From Laetmonice hystrix (Eukaryota): 64,000 nucleotides of DNA. Below are positions 49,143 to 63,604 of the stretch, piece by piece (positions within the stretch are counted from its first letter, which is position 1; every line of letters begins with the position of its first letter). The stretch lies in the NCBI GenBank assembly GCA_965235115.1, contig OZ249442.1, positions 16,678,001 to 16,742,000 on the forward strand, in the 5' to 3' direction. The position numbers and the translations under genes were made by a program. The notes below the pieces were generated by a model. It had not been told where the DNA came from. It saw nothing but the letters and a program-made list of their open reading frames with translations, and did not search any database.

Positions 49143-52100
49143 TTAGTTATGTTTTCCGTTCTGAAAATGTATATGACAGTTACAGTTGGCGCTAGAGCTG
49201 CCAAGACTCAGCACGGGCTTTGGGTCATCCGAGGCATCCGGGCGGTACATGGTTTTCGCCGGTAGAGGGCGTCCGAGGTGTTGACCAATAGAAAGTCCAA
49301 CGTTACGCGGGACAGAATCGAGCACCTCACGTCGCAATGTGAAACCTTTCATTTCGTCGTCTGGATCCATGGGTCGGTATGCCGACATTGGGGCAAAGAT
49401 CAATGGATCTTCATGAACGAGAGTCTGAAGTCGCCGTTCCCATTTCTAGTTCAGACCACGAAATGAAAGAGACGATCGTCTGTATATTTTCATGTAGGAT
49501 GCGAGCATTATAAGGCCTAAATATAAAAAATACAAGGACAAGTTATCAGGCATCTTTTGACGTCTTACCTCCAGGATTCGTTTGCAGTCGGCGGGTTTGG
49601 CAAAGTCCATGCCAAAGGCGATATGAGGCGACAGGACGTCAAATCCCACGAAATGTAGAATATTGTTCTGCAACGTTGAATTATTCACAGCTTTACAGAA
49701 ATATGCATACTGTATCTTAGTTTTATTATTAGTCTCAGGCGCAGATCATTGAAGTTACTTACAAAATGAAATACATCATTATAATTCTTTGCTTTCAATC
49801 ATTTGATATATTTTGCCGCAGGATTGAGATTTAAGAAGGGTATTGAATGAACTTTCGGGCATTGAATAAATTTCTCCGTAAAGTCACATTTTTAGAGTGT
49901 AAATATCATTATCGATGATGAAGTTTCCAACCTGTAGAGGCCAGAGAGAGACCTCGATATCTCCATTTGGCCCCGACTCCGTGTACCACCCCAACGGGCC
50001 GCCCATCGTCGTCGAGAGCATTGCTCTCTTACCCTATGCGTCAAACAAAACATGTAAAGACGTAACATCTTGCTTTTGTTTTAAAGACTGAGATTACATT
50101 GGTACCAGACATGACACCTTGGTGGGAGAGGAGGGGTTGGGTTCGGTCCTCAACGGTGCAAACGATGAATATTCAGAGGGGCCTTCAAAAATAATCCTAT
50201 CAAATATCGGATTTATACTTGTAATACACATCCAAAGGCCTGAGGAAACCTTTTTCTGATCTATTAGAATGTTACATCGTTCCGGTGACACTTTCATTGT
50301 GCGAATCACGTAGCGTTGTTGCCATGGAAACCAAGGACTGATTGAACGTTATGAAACGCCGCATGAAATATTTCTGCCATGACCAACCAATTCCAGTTTA
50401 ATCGGACTACCTTGAAATGCCCCTTGTCGAACATGTTGTCGGGACCGAAAGCGAAGCCTTGCATGAAGACGCGGTCAATCCAACCCTTGAGGATGGCGGG
50501 GAACCCCATCCAGTACAGAGGAAACTGGAAAATGACCAAGTCGGCGTCCTCCAGTTTCTTCTGTTCCTCCAGGATGTCCGGCGCCACTCGACCCTGCTTC
50601 CATGATATTCGAGTCTCCTGACTGTAACGGAAGTTGGCCGCGTCATTCGGTTCGCCTTCAAACAAATGTTGAACGAATATGTTAAAAGTGACCATAAAAA
50701 GATATAAAAGAAGCAAAGCGGAACATCTTAAAAAGAAAAGCTTCGTAGTCATTTTGATGGAAAGCAGTAAACACCTCTGTTTCCTGGGCCCAGTTTTTTT
50801 GTTTACTTTTCCACCGTGAGCAAGGGTGAGCTGAGCTGAGCAAGGGTGAGCATGAGCTCATTCTCACCGTTTTCGTGGTTTTTTGGTTTGCTTTTTCCCA
50901 TAAGGCGTGCTCATGGTGAGCAAGCTCGCGGAAAAACACCCGAAAAAACGAAAACAGTGAGCAAAACGGTGAGCATGCGCTTCTGCTCACCCTTGCTCAG
51001 CTCAGCTCACCCTTGCTCACGGTGGAAAAGTAAACAAAAAAACCGGGCCCTGGTAGTCGCAAGCATTAGTCAGTTGTCCAGACATCCACCATTGCAACAG
51101 AAAGGAGTGTAGGTGACTCGTTTTTGATTTTCTTAATATATTTTGGGCAAAGGGACATCCTATATACCGTCACTTAGCCGTTTCCTTCATTTTGGGGGTT
51201 GAAGTGTCACTTTTACCGCAACCTCCAAAAGGGTTAGCCGATGCATGTAACTGGTTGCAATACAGTTATATACTATGTCTAAAGCAGGGCTAAATTGAAG
51301 GTGGTGCATACAGGCTTGAGTGACATTATCAACGTGAAAGGTCCCAATTTGAATGGACCATAACCAACATCCAACAATATATCGGCCTCTTTTGCTGGAT
51401 GGCAGGGAAGACCGATTCGACTGCCTGGAAATCGTTACCCATGCAGTTCCATGATCCAATTGGTGAGGTCCATGCATATTTGGCCTCACTTTGAACACAT
51501 TTTGTCGGGGGCCTGTCCGGGGCAGGCAGTGGGATGACGTCGCAGAAATATTGACGTCCATGGTCAGAGGAAATCCTAGCACCATGCACTCCGCTCAGGC
51601 GACCCGCGGCATCATGTACAACCTGGCCATAGATTAAAATGGCAGTGGGCAACTATGTAGTGAACCTGTTGCATCTATCACGGCAACACGAGAGACAATT
51701 GTAGAAACATCTGTAATGACACCTGATCTTTTCATTCGTCTACAAATAATATTTCATGCAATGTCCACCAGTTGTACACATACTAACGACACCAACCCAG
51801 CTCGTGGTGCGGAGATCGACCGGTTGTGGACTTTAGACGTAGTAGGCCTATCCAAATACACCTATGCACCCAGTGTAAAGACATAATAATAATTCAGCGT
51901 ATGATATTGTTAAAGTAACTGTTTCCTTTGAACTGAGGCCAGAAAATCACATAGGCAAAATAGGCCTTCTTTCAAGACAGCTAGCCTAAACGTTTCAGTG
52001 TGGTCTATACCGCATGCACTGAAACATAAAACCCTGGGCAATGACCTTGCAGTATCGATGTAAATGCAGAGAGACCAGAGACTGTCAGGACGAACGCCGG

Positions 52101-54247: not shown

Positions 54248-56277
54248 TTAAACTAACTCATGGGTCAGGTTGGGCGTCTGGGTTTCAAACACAGGTTCCT
54301 CCTGACCCATCATAGGTCCCTCTGACGCCAGATGCTCGTGACCCTTCCTAGTACCCTCTGACGCCAGATGCTCGTGACCCATCATCGGTCCCTCTGACGC
54401 CAGATGCTCGTTAACCATCACAGGTCCCTCTGACGCCACATGCTCGTTAACCATCATCGGTCCCTCTGACGCCAGATGCTCGTGACCCATCATAGGTCTC
54501 TCTGACGCCAGAAGCTCGTTAACCATCATCGGTCCCTCTGACGCCATATGCTCGTGACCCTTCACAGGTCCCTCTGACGCCAGATGCTCGTGAACCATCA
54601 TAGGTCCCTCTGACGCCAGATGCTCGTTACCCATCATCGGTCCCTCTGACGCCAGATGCTCGTGACCCTTCACAGGTCTCTCTGACGCCAGATGCTCGTG
54701 ACCCGTCATCGGTCCCTCTGACGCCAGATGCTCGTGACCCGTCATCGGTCCCTCTGACGCCAGATGCTCCTGACCCATCATCGGTCCTTCTGACGCCAGA
54801 TGCTCGTGAACCATCATAGGTCCCTCTGAAGCCACATGCTCGTGACCCGTCATCGGTCTTTCTGATGCCAGATGCTCGTGACCCGTCATCGGTCCCTCTG
54901 ACGCCAGATGCTCCTGACCCATCATCGGTCCCTCTGACGCCAGATGCTCGTGACCCATCATAGGTCCCTCGCCCATCATGGGCATCTCTGAGCTCATGAC
55001 CTTTTCTTTAGAGATGGCGCCGACTTCCTCGGACAGCTTTTTGTTATCTTCAAATGACGATTCCTGGCTGTCTTTGGGTGATTCGTTCTCAAGCCTTTCC
55101 TGTCTGTCCTCAGATTTCTCATTAGACTGCTCATCACACTTATGGTGCCCATGGTGTCCCTGATGTTGGTGGTGCTGGTGCTGGTGTTGGTGGTGACGGT
55201 GGTGGTGGTGGATTGGATGACGTCCTTCATGGTCAGCATTGCCTGGAGGTGTTAAACCAAAACGTTTATCTTTGATTGACTCCGGTTCTTCGGTCAAACC
55301 AGAATGCATGGCTTTGATTGACTCCGGTTCTTCGGTCAAACCAGAATGCATGGCTTTGATTGACTCCGGTTCTTCGGTCAAACCAGAATGCATGGCTTTG
55401 ATTGACTCCGGTTCTTCGGTCAGACTAGCGTGCATGGCTTTGATTGACTCCGGTTCTTCGGTCAGACTAGCGTGCATGGCTTTGATTGACTCCGGTTCTT
55501 CGGTCAGACTAGCGTGCATGGCTTTGATTGACTCCGGTTCTTCGGTCAGACTAGCGTGCATGGCTTTGATTGACTCCGGTTCTTCGGTCAGACTAGCGTG
55601 CATGGCTTTGATTGACTTTGGTTCTTCGGTCAAACCAGAAGGCATGGTCTGGATGGGCTCCGGTTCTGCAGTTGGCTCTGAGTGACCGACCTTGATCGGT
55701 TCCATTTCTGGTGTAGGTTCGAGCCCTTGCATCTTTGCGGGGAGAACAGACTTGAAGGGCCTCAGGTCGTGGGCTGTAAGAAAACGACATGCGTTAAAAT
55801 AAAAAGGTTGCAGCAAATTCCTGATTGTCAGGAATTTTGAAAAGTTTTGAAAAGAAACTGCTATGTGATCCAAGTTTATATTAACTTGGTGTCGTGCAGG
55901 CGTTGCTGGAAGAAAATCTATTTGACATGAAATTCTCGCACAAAATATAAAGGGAGAAATTCTGTGATAGAATATGCGTTTTACTGCAAGTGATCGCGTT
56001 TGCCAATTTGAAACAAAATCAAATGGGGAACACTGCAAAATAACAGTAATTTCTTATCCATCCATAAAAGACGATTTGTAACATTCTTGATACGATAATG
56101 TTAGAAAAGTGGAGATTCCTACTTTACAGATGTTGTGACATACTTTACAAATTTCCGAATAATATAAGACTACTGCATAGTGAGCCTACACTTACCGGCA
56201 TGCTTTTTGTGAAGAGGGTGGCAGTTTGTCAGAGTCACAACGACAAGAATGACCGTCAAAGCATCTCGAAGCAACAT
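54248..56277 (-). CDS. Secreted His/Met/Glu-rich tandem-repeat protein, 535 aa, uncharacterised
   Basis: Exon 1 56277-56196 encodes a signal-peptide-like leader MLLRDALTVILVVVTLTNCHPLHKKHA (donor G|gtaagt). Exon 2 55773-54248 (ttttcttacag| acceptor, matching phase 1) is open for 508 codons: 9 x 14-aa (S/A)(G/S)LTEEPESIKAMH, a poly-His/Gln tract, an acidic linker, and 18 x 12-aa EGPMMGHEHLAS. Confidence 0.85.
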
Positions 56278-57542
56278 GGCCTTAATTTGAGAAGGTTTTC
56301 CCGAAGCAAGTACTTCAAGTTTAAAAGCTGCAATGATTAAAATGATAATATCAATAACAGAAGGGGGGATAACGGTGGCCTCCAAACCAACAATAGGCTA
56401 CATCGACCTTGGACCTAAAACTTCTTAGTGTGCGGGTCCACGGACTAGCACGTGCGCAATGTTGACTTATTGAAAATCCGTTTGTTCAATATGTAGGCCT
56501 ATACTTTTTCCAGTATCGTGGGTAAGTAAATTTTTATCTTTCAATATAACCGGAGCATAATCCTAAAATCAAATTATTCCTTAAAGGTAGGGCCGAAATG
56601 ATTCATCGATAAATTGGTGTATGGCGATATTTTGTGTCCGCTAACGACGAAGGTCAAAATATCGATACAGAACGCCCAAGAGTAATCACATGGGACTGGA
56701 CCCATATTTTCTCCTAGTTTTTGTTTTTTTTACATCGAATATCCAGTTCCGGTGCACATTAAGAAAGGGTGTTTCGAAAGTCTAAAGAGTCACACGTTGA
56801 AATCCCTGAAGGCGGAGTCACGGCCACATATTCGTAGTTAACACGCTCGGGGAAATATATTCAGAATGTGGGACATTGTTTTCATGGCTTGACAGCACCG
56901 GTGTTTGCGAGAAAGTAATGGGGGTCATATATTGCTAAAGCATAGCTCCATCCCTGGTGGCGAATATATATAGATCCACGGGGACCTGCACAATGTCTAA
57001 GACAATGCCCGTTGCATTTTTTAGACGTCAGTGGGGAGCGACACAAAAGGCAGAACAAGAGAGCGTCTTACCATAGACAGGCCAGCCAGGCCCTGCCACC
57101 AGCACCCTAATTTGCATATCAAATGGCTCTCAAGACATGCACGTGCCTGAAATGTGAAGAAGGCACTGGCCTCGCAATTTGGCTATGTGACTGTCAAAAT
57201 TGCTGTTTATTTCCATTAAAAGGGATTCTGGACACAAAATGTGTTTCAAAATTAACTTTTATTGTTTACGTTAAACGCGCAGGGGCCCGATTTTGCCCAT
57301 AAAAAGTTATGTGTGGCAGAGGGGCAAGCGGACTGAGCCCCTCTGCATTATGGGAGATTGCCCCTGCCTTTCCTCCTGATTATTTTATAGTATTGATCAC
57401 CAGACACGTTTTCCCGCTAGAGGTCGCTCGAAAAAAGGATCTGGACACAAACGCCTATCTAGGCGTGGCGATCAAGGCTGACACGGTGACCGTGATAGAA
57501 AACGATCATCGGCGCTGATTGCGGGATCTGCGGCGGGATCTG

Positions 57543-57793
57543 GGCCCGGTTTCTTGGTGGAGCTTGAGCTGAAATTCTTGGCTCAAGCTCAAGGATTTGG
57601 AGCTTGAGCCAAGGATTCTCGGCTCAAGCTCAAATTTGGGTTTCACAGTCAGACGGCCGTTGAGCTTGAGCTTGAGCTGGGACATGACTGTGAAACCCAA
57701 ATTTGAGGTTGAGCCGAGAATCCTTGGCTCAAGCTCCAAATCCTTGAGCTTGAGCCAAGAATTTCAACTCAAGCTCCACCAAGAAACCGGGCC
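57543..57793. mobile_element. PIF/Harbinger-type MITE (251 bp), nearly fully palindromic
   Basis: CTG|GGCCCGGTTTCTTGGTGGAGCTTGAG... / ...CTCAAGCTCCACCAAGAAACCGGGCC|CTG; TIR ~110 bp, CTG TSD. A lone right-end copy occurs at 63361-63375. Confidence 0.85.
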
Positions 57794-59501
57794 CTGGTCT
57801 CCTGCTCTAAATGCCGCTCCGCGAAGCGAGAGAGTCTGGTGACCCGCCTATAGCCCACATCCAAACAGGGGAAGGCAGGTTAGGGTGCTGACATCTGGTG
57901 GAATCAGCCCGCAGATGTATTTGTGTCCTGTCCGTATATCCAGCTGGCGGGTATAGGACTGGTGGCCGAGTGTGGTCCTGGCTGGCATTTAAGGCGCCCA
58001 TATTTAGTGAAACGATAGCCATCACCCTGTTCATGACAGACTCTGTAAAATCACCTTTTTCGACTGAGTTCTGACACTGCCTGGACGCGATGTGTTTTCA
58101 TTTACCTATGACCAATCACCTGTAGAGACGCCAGATACGAACGTTAGGACTTGGACCCTTGAAGAGTCAGACCAATCCCTGATTTGTTGGTTGTTCTCAA
58201 TTTTTCTTGCTCTCGCCTCCGATTCATCAAGATCTGGGAGGGGCTGAATGAGCCGAAATAATGTGGCCTATCACCAAAACGATGTTTGCGGACATATCTC
58301 CTGTCGGACATAACTAGCCGTTCGGACATATCTAGCCGGAACACGCCCTCTGTTTTTTTCCTTCAATTTTCTTTCAAACTTAAACCCATTTAGTTGGTCC
58401 CGAGCTAGCGTAGGAAAAACATTTCGCTGCCTGGCTATATGGGTCGACCGCATGCATAGACAACTGGGGCGCCACCTGGCGAATATGACACTATGAAAAT
58501 CATCGTGTAGAAGCACAAGTGTAAGCCTATACGAGTATATATTTCGTTTCAGTCCTACCTAAAAGCCCGAACCAAAAGAACAAATTTGTTTAGGAATGGT
58601 TACCGCCTAAAAAGTTAGACTACAACAGTGTATAGCATAATTAGGTGTTAATGACTGGTATACTTACTGTAGGCGACTTTTGTTGTATTCCAAACCAGTT
58701 CAGCAGGCTGTAGGTCGATGGCAATGACAACAAGTCAGGATCACGCGTTTATATAGCCATGCGAATTTCTAACAGCTGTTTGAATGTCACGTATCTGTAT
58801 GTATATAACATCTGTCAGACATGCCTGAATTAACGTGTCTTTATTAACAGGTGTCAATACTGCTCAACCATGACTAATTCTTTGCAAGAACATGAAACAT
58901 AAAAACGTAACATCAGATATACAATAACAGCAAACGGTAGGCCATATATATGTTCTATTTCTACTTAGTTTTATTCCTTTATGATTTATGAGGTAAATGT
59001 GACCATCACGGCCGCAACTCTTGAATGGTATGTACAAATCTAGCAAGTCGAATATCGGTGAAACCTGTCTTGGGACCACTGCCTCGTCACACAGAGTTAT
59101 TAACATGCAAAAACCCCAGGTTCTCTATATATACCTATAAATCTACCTAAAACTTTTATTTGTTAATAACTATAGGAGGTTCATCTGTAACACTTCCCCC
59201 AGATATGCCATATATCAGGTGTCAGCTATACTCGTAGAAAACAAAGCTGACTGAATTTGTCTCATGATATCATAGTTTTCTTTCTAAATTCTTTTGGCTT
59301 TTTGACAAAGAATTTTTCATCCAGTTTGAATCAAAATGAAATCAAATTAATACAACTCTTATTACTATTAAGGCCATTCACGATTATCTCTTAGTGCAAT
59401 GACTCCAAAATGAAGTTAATGAAATTCAACATTCCAGTTGCCTGTTGTCGCTTTGAAGCGGCCGTCATATACGTACACACCTGGTTGATGACAAAATCTT
59501 T

Positions 59502-60813: not shown

Positions 60814-62500
60814 TCAGATGTCTTCGTCCTTCAGCACCAATTCACGGGAGTCTCGCACTCGACTGTACGCTGATGACGTGGACACGGCCATAATGCTGTC
60901 ACGGGAGTTACACCCACGCCTCTTTTTCAAAACGAGTCTGTAGAGCAGAAGTCCCGCGAGAAGTGCGATGAGAAGCCCTAGAATGACCCCGAGACCGATG
61001 GCGAGAGTTCGGGGCGAGGGCTGTGACGGGAGAGGGTCACAGCGGAAGAAACTCATATTGGTGTCGTAAACAGCCATTCCGAAAACCTGACTCGGTTTGG
61101 CACATCTGTAGGATAAAAACGAAAATCGATATGTTTGTTTAAGTTATATTTATCAAATCATTTCTAGGGAAATGTACGCAGGGGGCGGGGGCCGGGGGGC
61201 CGGGGGGGCGGGGGGCCGGGGGGCCGGGGGGCCGGGGGGGCGGGGGGTACGTGTGGCGAATTAATGAAATGATTTTAGTAGCTGTAACTGTAGATCAGGT
61301 AAGTCACAGGTAAGGTGTCACTTACTTTACATAAACTGATTTACCGGTACGGCTAAAGTATGGAACACACATGCCCAAAACAGGTGTATGTTTGTCCAAT
61401 CGAATAAACAAGAATATAAATGAAAAAGTCTTGTTTTAAGGACTTCTCCCTACTTACGTCAAATTTCTACCCAAATTCCATTTGAGTATTTCCTTCGACC
61501 GAAGCCATACCGTTTGGCAGTGACAATTCCACGGGTTGTTGGTGACACGCAGTTTGTTAGTCAGGCCAAACGGGAGAGCGTTTCTGGGCAGCGACTCCAG
61601 GCGGTTGTCGCTGAGATCAAGGTCGGTCAAGGACGGCGTATTGCGGAAGGCGAGCTGATGTATGTCGCTGATTAGGTTCCCACGGAGGTGTAGCTTGCTG
61701 AGTCTGGTCAGACCCTCAAACGTTGAATGGCCTATACTAGTCAGCTCGTTGTAAGACAAAACCAAGTCATCTAATGAGGACCGTCTTGGTGAAGGAAAAC
61801 GCGTTAATTCTTTAATTCTGTTCAAAGAAACATCCAGGGTACGGATATTCGGAAGGGGCTTTATGAACTCCAGTGTTGTGAGTCGGTTTCTGGATATGTT
61901 CAAATATGCCAGAGGGCTATGGATGTCGAAGGCCGTGGGGGACACTTCATATATCCGACAGGCTGAGACGTCTAGCGTGTCAATCTGAGGCAGAGTGTGC
62001 CCACTGAAAACATTGCTACCGATTTCATAGAGAGGGTTTCCTCTCAGATGTAGCTGTGTGAGAGAACGCAGCCCAGAGAATGTTTCTCTCCCCAACTCGG
62101 TAATACCGTTATACGTCATACTCAACGTCTCCAAGTCTCGCAGCTCCGTGAAAGCGCCAGCATCAATGACCCGGATGTTATTGTTGTCAAGATGGAGGGC
62201 CTTGAGGCTCGAATAAGGCACGTTGCCCAGGGTGACAATGTTATTGAATTTGAAGCGCATTTCAAGGAGGTGTGGGAGGTCGTCTGGTACGGAGGTCAGG
62301 CCGGTTCGGAGGCACGTGACAGAGTAGACCTGATGCTCCTGATCGCCCGTGCACGTACAGTTATGGGGCATCATTGCAGGACACAAATTGGCGTCTATGC
62401 CGGACATGAGGCTTGCCAGAGTTACCATGACAACGATCGAAAAGCTGAGCAGATCGTTCCATGGTAGACACGTCATCGTCATACTCTCTACGGCCACCAT
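60814..62500 (-). CDS. Leucine-rich-repeat type I transmembrane protein (signal peptide, LRRNT, ~11 LRRs, LRRCT, TM, short tail), ~444 aa
   Basis: Exons 62500-61458 and 61105-60814(TGA), phase 2 junction. CPAMMPHNCTC..VTC (LRRNT); repeated LxxLxLxxNxI; NPWNCHC..NLTCAKPSQVFG..FRC (LRRCT); TM LAIGLGVILGLLIALLAGLLLY; KKRR stop-transfer. An upstream exon ending at 62663 (ATG 62698) could add 16 aa in frame. Confidence 0.9.
61181..61247 (+). repeat. G-rich (GGGGGCC)-like repeat in the LRR gene intron
   Basis: gggggcgggggccggggggccggggggg... with about nine G-runs of 5 or more. Confidence 0.85.
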
Positions 62501-63604
62501 CGCCGGCTTTTCCTGTTGATGAGAAACAACGTCGAAAATGTTAGGATGGACATTTCTTCGATACCAAAGTAACTCAAACATGCAATTTACATTCAGGTAA
62601 GTATACACAGATAAAACAATGACCATATTGCCTATGATATGTGTTCGCTCCCCAGACCCTACCTGATTTTTCTTTTCCAACCTCATACGGAAACACATGA
62701 CATTTTTACACCAACAGAGACATGCGATCAGGCGGAGAATTGGGAGGGGCTGGAGCGAAGAGAGAAGTCAAGAAGAAAGATTATTCTGGCAGACAAACAG
62801 ACATCCTTGCGACCGACTCGATGGGTCCGATGTCGGGCTTGGTGTCGCTATGGCGACTGCAAACTCCCAAACGGCAGTAAATCGACCGCTCCCAACGGCA
62901 GGCGTCACTTTGAACAGCGGGCGCTCCTCTCTTATAGTATACATCAGCCGAACTATAGGCTACGCCCCTGGAGCTATACGTATACGGACCCGTCAATATA
63001 TAGCCTGAAGCTCACGCGACATAAATGTGGGAATGCTCCTCTTTCACAGGTTGCCTCTTCAAGGCTATCAACCAGCCTTATATATTTTATAGCCTCCGGG
63101 AGAAATCGGCATTCGTTCTGGCTTGTTCTAACGACTTGCAATGGCTCAAATATGGCTAATGAGCGGGCTGATTCTATCGACTTGCATTGGTAAATATAGC
63201 TTATGGAGAGTAAACTATATAAGTACTATTCTAAGTAGAGTGCGGCTCAGTCGTCCCGTGGACAAAGACCTGGTTTTTCGGTGACGCTTGAGTCGAAAGT
63301 TACTTCTAATGAAGTGACTCGAGGCTTGAGCGGTAATTTTCGACCCCCCCCCCCCACCCCCAAGAAACCGGGCCCCGGTCGCCTTTAACATATCGATGGT
63401 TCAGTCAATTTTCACATAGATGAATGAATAGAATCGTTGCAACAGGATCCATAATCATTATGTTTGTCCTGATTTCTTCTTGATACCTGACAAAAAAAGG
63501 ATGATTCAGATGGTGATCCCCTAAACCCCACGTCCCACGTCTAGGCCGTCGACAAGGGAACCAATTTTCCAACAAATGCCTGCAATGATTCGCAATCCTG
63601 CATG

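Follow-up and report, generated by a model that had tools for sequence, protein, structure and literature searches.

What is encoded between positions 54,248 and 56,277 of a 64,000-nucleotide (nt) stretch of contig OZ249442.1 from the worm Laetmonice hystrix (assembly GCA_965235115.1, positions 16,678,001 to 16,742,000; hereafter the window)? A leader-like exon is followed there by a long open reading frame made largely of two tandem arrays, and the question is whether this is a gene at all and, if so, what its product might do. We conclude that it is probably a real, expressed gene. Its body would have arisen behind a signal-peptide exon by the expansion of three simple sequences, namely two in-frame minisatellites and one His/Gln microsatellite. 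Our favoured reading of the product, advanced tentatively and at rather less than even confidence, is a lineage-restricted, secreted and disordered polyanion that acts as a multivalent binder of Cu/Zn-type ions.

The gene model lies on the minus strand and consists of a leader exon (56277-56196, 82 nt) and a long exon (55773-54248, 1526 nt), which join in frame over 1608 nt to give 535 amino acids and a TAA stop codon. The first exon is translated as MLLRDALTVILVVVTLTNC-HPLHKKHA. The splice donor is CCG/GTAAGT and the acceptor TTTTCTTACAG/CC, where the slash marks the exon boundary. A first-pass annotation of the window had described this plan, a leader exon plus one long exon carrying four blocks, and it is present as described. 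The blocks are array A, a His/Gln block, an acidic linker and array B. Nine 14-residue repeats had been counted in array A; the array exists, but it contains eight full units and one of 11 residues. The 12-residue array with paired Met and HxH motifs is also there, with about 19 units, but HxH is kept in only 12 of these and the Met pair in 11-12. The Lys-Arg pair following array A was correctly noted, as were the His/Gln block, the acidic linker and the single Cys of the mature chain. The pair belongs to a K-D-K-R motif at residues 195-198. The mature Cys lies downstream of the His block, and the only other Cys is Cys19 of the leader.

Tandem Repeats Finder reports a 42-nt unit of 9.5 copies at 55270-55667 (94% matches), five of whose units are identical, and a 36-nt unit of 18.7 copies at 54299-54970 (88% matches); it also detects the CAC/CAG microsatellite beneath the His block. 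The tryptic peptide expected from array A is AMHASLTEEPESIK. The composition of the whole protein is strongly biased (Glu 16%, His 11.2%, Ser 9%, Met 8%, Pro 8% and Gly 8.0%). In absolute terms there are about 60 His, 44 Met and 86 Glu residues, with 7 Asp, 4 Phe, and neither Tyr nor Trp.

What argues that this is a gene? The 158 non-repeat codons are all open, for which the chance is about 3e-4 at the stop-codon frequency of the window. The periods of the two arrays are multiples of 3, and a single frame runs through both of them as well as through a 93-codon non-repeat spacer, a 44-codon N-terminal part and a 19-codon tail. Neither a frameshift nor a stop is found in some 28 repeat units, and no other reading frame is open across array B. 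We trained a codon-usage model on 4154 codons from HSP70, tubulin and leucine-rich repeat (LRR) open frames of the same genome. The non-repeat codons in the proposed frame score +0.14 bits/codon. None of the other five frames scores as high, and 99.7% of random window segments of equal length score lower, although this score partly repeats the open-frame argument because the random segments contain stops.

The leader exon provides a second line of evidence. Both strands of the 64-kb window (128 kb of strand) were scanned for an ATG, an open segment with a hydrophobic core and a GTRAGT donor, with thresholds that were set after the exon had been seen. Exactly one match was returned, which is exon 1, and it is in the phase needed by the long exon. 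Looser rules gave 7-9 candidates in 128 kb of strand, with 1-2 in phase 1. The position -3 to the ATG is a purine. No TATA box is found within 420 nt upstream. The DNA and the non-repeat parts of the protein are unique in the 627-Mb genome, where only the His-coding microsatellite DNA recurs elsewhere. The locus is therefore neither a transposon nor a dispersed satellite.

How isolated is the protein? The first-pass annotation recognized no family, and our searches agree. Against Pfam-A there is no true match; UBA_Crd2 alone rises above the cut-off (31 bits), with no stretch passing singly, so that the score is a sum over repeats. A word-indexed search of 5.8 billion protein clusters found no relative, and the ESM Atlas gave scores at noise level only. 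Exhaustive phmmer comparison with 1.84 billion representatives gave 389 matches, of which the best 150 were listed. Each of these 150 aligns to array A or array B alone, with a few extending into the neighbouring sequence, and none of them combines more than 8% His with a high Met content. Those inspected are unrelated tandem-repeat proteins, for example with Gln/Pro repeats, one of them ending in a Cys-rich, lectin-like region. No described His/Met-rich worm protein was found in the literature. As far as sequence comparison can tell, the gene is an orphan at the sensitivity reached.

Nor does the genome of the worm hold a second copy of the non-repeat parts. The whole protein has 109 matches there, which we considered as paralogues and rejected, as they are other minisatellites that are open in several frames. 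On several contigs there are many minisatellites of 30-45 nt that are open in two to four frames over hundreds of codons. One open frame of 401 residues (G000:C5:6428854-6432528, minus strand) contains about 19 repeats of a 12-residue DHIKLEGPDDCS unit followed by non-repeat sequence, and adjoins an open frame for a C2H2 zinc-finger protein on the same strand. It was examined as a paralogue of array B and rejected, since the two have in common only E-G-P and one His.

A number of observations weigh against our reading, and we gather them here. The genome is rich in 36-42-nt minisatellites that are open in several frames, and for this reason long repeat open frames are by themselves poor evidence for a gene in this species. 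No orthologue that could provide evidence from conservation was found. The search for RNA runs covering the stretch returned only three contig sets, all of DNA type and from one sample; they are assigned to DNA because their contigs run through the intron unspliced. Alignment of these contigs over 55670-58000 gives a view of allelic variation, with two haplotypes that are about 1-1.5% apart between 55670 and 56900. The leader is intact in both, which for its part speaks for the gene, with a single conservative L>I allele at 56247, and the intron contains five single-nucleotide polymorphisms (SNPs). SNPs number 1 in 186 nt of coding sequence against 22 in 1045 nt of non-coding sequence, a deficit that is not significant (P = 0.24). 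Within the arrays, the variants between repeat units comprise 8 synonymous and 15 non-synonymous changes where 22% synonymous would be expected (P = 0.12). Finally, the putative metal ligands of array B are its most variable positions: another residue stands in place of H2 in 6 of 18 units, of M12 in 7 and of M11 in 4, whereas E3, A6, S7 and E8 are invariant. The contig alignment also shows a 6-bp deletion at 56494 and five SNPs in the 32 nt upstream of the ATG (56281-56309).

Differences among the repeat units thus look neutral. The first-pass annotation had taken codon-level variation in the repeats as support for a real gene, and this argument therefore carries little weight.

Such observations are what would be expected of a young or non-functional open frame, in which the minisatellites and the His microsatellite share a frame by chance behind a fortuitous leader-like ATG segment, and which is transcribed barely or not at all. 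The arrays are very young, as the five identical 42-nt units attest; the differences among repeat units would fit neutral change, with the lowest conservation at the putative ligands; and the lack of an RNA run, of a homologue and of an upstream TATA box, together with the many open minisatellite frames of this genome, all lean the same way. Against this stands a high joint improbability. Chance would have to provide 158 open non-repeat codons that score higher as coding sequence than any of the other five frames, and some 28 repeat units free of frameshifts and stops. It would also have to supply, in the right phase and 422 nt upstream, a signal-peptide exon of a nearly unique kind that ends in a consensus GTAAGT donor, to provide a good acceptor, and to leave one AATAAA at the right distance. 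On balance we regard a non-functional frame as unlikely, but as a possibility to be taken seriously. The coordinates of the proposed gene are collected in Table 1.

Table 1. Elements of the proposed gene, with positions in the window and residue numbers in the 535-residue translation.
Feature	Position	Strand	Description
Exon 1	56196..56277	-	ATG in AAGGCC context; 27 codons + 1 nt
Signal peptide (predicted)	residues 1-19, codons 56277-56221	-	MLLRD-ALTVILVVVTL-TNC, then HPLHKKHA
Intron	55774..56195	-	422 nt, phase 1; GTAAGT...polypyrimidine tract-CAG
Non-repeat N-terminal region	residues 20-72; exon 2 start 55640..55773	-	Pro/Glu-rich, mature protein
Array A	55271..55639, residues 73-195	-	8 x 14 residues (A/S)(S/G)LTEEPESIKAMH + one 11-residue unit
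Sole Lys-Arg pair	55262..55267; K-D-K-R residues 195-198	-	Context I-K-D-K-R/F (slash, candidate cut); candidate proprotein-convertase site
His/Gln block	55142..55234, residues 208-238	-	DHEGRHPIHHHHRHHQHQHQHHQHQGHHGHH; CAC/CAT/CAG microsatellite
Acidic Glu/Ser/Asp/Lys linker	54992..55141, residues 239-288	-	Sole mature Cys, six S-x-E, one N-E-S sequon
Array B	54308..54991, residues 289-516	-	About 19 x 12 residues, consensus GHEHLASEGPMM, 36-nt minisatellite
Non-repeat C-terminal tail	54248..54307, residues 517-535	-	GQEEPVFETQTPNLTHELV + TAA (54250-54248)
AATAAA	54101..54106	-	142 nt past stop; only polyadenylation hexamer in 258 nt after stop

What kind of protein would this be? If the gene is real, its product is very probably secreted and disordered, as the first-pass annotation had proposed. 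By a rule-based reading the n-region of the leader is charged, its hydrophobic core spans 11 residues (Kyte-Doolittle maximum 3.0) and T-N-C precedes the likely cut; the leader is also joined in the right splice phase. Removal of the 19 leader residues would leave a mature chain of 516 residues, of about 57 kDa and an isoelectric point near 5.4. On a charge-hydropathy plot every block falls on the disordered side, and 60% of the residues are disorder-promoting. The layout is not that of a peptide-hormone or neuropeptide precursor, as the repeat units abut without basic pairs and there is one K-R in the whole protein.

The computed net charge, with the pKa of His set at 6.3, is about -56 at pH 8.1, -16 at pH 6, close to zero at pH 5.5 and +12 at pH 5. 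The His block taken alone moves from +1 to +16; for array B the shift is from -30 to +2. The pH-switchable character that had been suggested for the protein is thus borne out by calculation. The change from -56 at the pH of seawater to near neutrality at pH 5.5 arises because the 60 or so His residues titrate near pH 6.

A regular fold was considered for array B. AlphaFold2 run on the single sequence gave low-confidence helices for array A, and for array B a succession of 9-residue strands (MMGHEHLAS) and 3-residue EGP turns, with a predicted local distance difference test score (pLDDT) of 80-88 in one of five models. Taken at face value this would be a β-solenoid, displaying ladders of Met and His on one face. 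The remaining four models have a whole-protein mean pLDDT of 40-44, and Foldseek matched the array B model to no solved fold in the Protein Data Bank (best E = 0.49). The antisense frame of array A, folded as a control, gave the same strand-turn pattern with pLDDT up to 73, likewise in one of five models. For repeat sequences, the production by AlphaFold2 of β-solenoids that are confident yet unrealistic has been documented (PMC11795689). Because a nonsense antisense repeat folds alike, and in view of the published artefact, we take the solenoid to be a probable artefact and give the fold no weight. Charge and hydropathy also place array B on the disordered side, and we find a solenoid barely credible. 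The antisense open frame itself (55239-55685, plus strand, 148 residues, units MALIDSGSSVKPEC/MALIDSGSSVRLAC) is a by-product of array A and is confined to it.

We return to the reading that we favour, an extracellular binder of Cu/Zn-type ions. We arrive at it because side-chain chemistry is the only functional lead. Granted a real, secreted and disordered protein, a metal-related physiological role has by analogy a chance approaching, but not exceeding, one half. The protein contains 9 MxxH, 1 HxxM, 10 MxxxH, 8 MH and 20 HxH motifs. In array B the ligand set would be M-M-G-H-E-H, which offers MxxH, MxxxH and HxH spacings adjoining two Glu residues. Further ligands might come from the M-H that ends each unit of array A, from the poly-His/Gln block and from the carboxylates of the 86 Glu. 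The protein would work outside the cell, in mucus, in a gut or gland secretion or in body fluid, by binding or buffering such ions at many sites of low affinity. Given the charge switch, it would be compact, or would associate with itself, while in an acidic secretory granule, and would become expanded and metal-avid after release. Cleavage at K-D-K-R is possible, judging from the sequence, and might split acidic array A from the His block and array B. The variability of the ligand positions speaks against a strict role for every single site. It would be tolerable for a sponge of this kind; neutral drift, or a binding surface for something other than metal, would fit it equally well.

The closest functional likeness is to bacterial SilE and PcoE. 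SilE is a disordered periplasmic 'molecular sponge' with MxxH/HxxM motifs that takes up to eight Ag+, six Cu2+ or five Zn2+ (PMC5008109). Like these proteins the worm protein is exported and disordered (in both respects by prediction), lacks Cys ligands and repeats His and Met at i/i+3-4; it carries the defining motifs behind a signal peptide, in a chain of disordered composition. There are clear differences. SilE is bacterial and far shorter, with four imperfect motifs that fold to helices upon binding, whereas the worm protein has two long, near-perfect arrays with Pro or Gly in every unit and is far more acidic. Pfam and phmmer revealed no sequence homology to SilE or PcoE; the likeness is functional only. 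A more specific version of our reading would make the protein an animal counterpart of the SilE/PcoE sponge, whose 20-30 or so His/Met/Glu sites would capture Cu(I)/Cu(II) outside the cell, as well as Zn or Ag. Its host would be a sediment-dwelling worm, the load would be taken up or released as the net charge flips near pH 5.5, and the protein would be of recent origin from minisatellite expansions. In this specific form we consider the proposal improbable.

A second comparison is with the ectodomain of the copper transporter CTR1, where both Cu(II) and Cu(I) are bound by His-Met clusters that adjoin acidic residues (PMC8867124, PMC9117721). The worm protein likewise has His and Met grouped beside acidic residues. 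In CTR1 the clusters make up only a short part of a membrane transporter and contain MxM/MxxM motifs; here the protein would be soluble, and Met residues are paired in adjacent positions about 12 times.

Could the protein be real, secreted and disordered but have a function unconnected with metals? It might be an immune effector or opsonin of the SpTransformer type, a protein that attaches to microbial surfaces and folds upon contact; the precursor of a cationic, His-rich antimicrobial fragment set free by cleavage at K-D-K-R; or a mucus-like hydrating polyanion. The SpTransformer (Sp185/333) genes of sea urchins are small two-exon genes with a hydrophobic leader in exon 1 and repeats plus a His-rich region in exon 2, and their protein is disordered (PMC5491942). 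The present gene has the same plan, with a leader exon and a repeat-bearing mature exon that includes a His-rich region. Below pH 6.5 the His block is moreover highly cationic (+12 to +16), and it follows immediately on the dibasic site; and, as said above, the variable 'ligand' residues would suit a non-metal surface. The SpTransformer genes, however, are a clustered and diversified echinoderm family of about 50 members, with a Gly-rich region and an RGD motif. Here there is a single copy, Glu/Met-rich, from which both the RGD motif and a Gly-rich region are absent, and with no sequence similarity to SpTransformer. A Ser + Thr + Pro content of about 22% is not mucin-like. We hold a non-metal role to be unlikely, but to deserve serious consideration.

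The remaining candidate function is that of a building block of a hardened, adhesive or mineralized material such as jaw, tube cement or skeleton, cross-linked or condensed via histidine, on the model of Nvjp-1, the squid histidine-rich beak proteins or acidic biomineral proteins. The protein is predicted to be secreted, it is His-rich and repetitive, and its charge depends upon pH. There are also six S-x-E motifs in the linker, of the kind phosphorylated in secreted matrix proteins. Known worm and molluscan materials provide a measure of this idea. The nereid jaw proteins Nvjp-1 and Nai11527 contain about 29-36% Gly and about 16-27% His, and Nvjp-1 binds zinc (PMC9465683, PMC13120676). They resemble the present protein as secreted, disordered, His-rich worm proteins with pH-dependent behaviour, though metal binding is here only proposed. 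With its lower Gly and His contents (8.0 and 11.2%), 16% Glu, anionic character, richness in Met and lack of homology, the protein does not belong with them. For the histidine-rich beak protein of squid, phase separation is reported to use aromatic stacking (PMC6884462). It too is secreted and disordered, with His-rich repeats and a charge set by pH, but it relies on Tyr/aromatic stacking and Gly-rich pentapeptides, whereas the worm protein is polyanionic and devoid of Tyr and Trp.

The lack of Tyr and Trp means that 3,4-dihydroxyphenylalanine (DOPA) or dityrosine cross-links and aromatic stickers are unavailable. The chain carries a strong negative charge at the pH of seawater and would therefore be expected to remain in solution unless it is loaded with cations. 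The first-pass annotation had listed adhesive, coacervating and biomineral functions among its candidates. The first two, and a sclerotized material with them, are weakened by the aromatic content (four Phe), and a biomineral matrix is weakened by the presence of 86 Glu but only 7 Asp; there is also no sequence similarity to such proteins. We judge a structural role very unlikely.

The neighbouring genes give no functional hint. About 5 kb upstream (61454-62698, minus strand) is an uninterrupted ATG-to-stop frame of 414 residues that consists nearly entirely of leucine-rich repeats (LRR_8, E = 7e-51). At 50306-50752 (minus strand) there is a match to Flavodoxin_2, like an NAD(P)H-quinone reductase of the NQO type (E = 1e-21), which is probably one exon of a neighbouring gene. 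A dispersed repeat of high copy number, or a fragment of a transposon, occupies 57074-58000, a short way upstream of the gene. Its summed contig depth is about 1,000-68,000 compared with about 30-50 on the unique flanks, and the contigs have many small joints and loose ends there. A run of N is present at about 53.8-53.95 kb of the window. Elsewhere in the genome, tubulin-domain matches number at least 52. Many of them are closely packed in tandem and score identically (G000:C11:20.67-20.70 Mb, C8:7.81-7.84 Mb and C10:4.19-4.38 Mb), which points to large, recently duplicated tubulin gene arrays.

What would the protein mean for the biology of these animals? Secreted repeat proteins without relatives are frequent in genomes of this type, and this one is best filed with a kind already known, the secreted, disordered, His-rich tandem-repeat proteins of marine invertebrates. 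Its unusual features are the acidity, the Met pairs and the lack of Tyr and Trp. Without expression, the locus would be just another open minisatellite frame. If it is expressed, it would define among those proteins a new composition class that is acidic, Met-paired and aromatic-free (no Tyr/Trp), and that falls outside the Gly/His/Tyr materials hitherto studied. It would likewise be a clear case of a secreted protein made almost wholly by recent in-frame growth of minisatellites behind a signal-peptide exon. The 12-residue unit is short enough to be synthesized, and direct tests of Cu, Zn and Ag binding and of the pH switch are therefore feasible. Metal binding, if true, would bear on the metal tolerance of sediment animals and on the design of bio-inspired metal-binding polymers.

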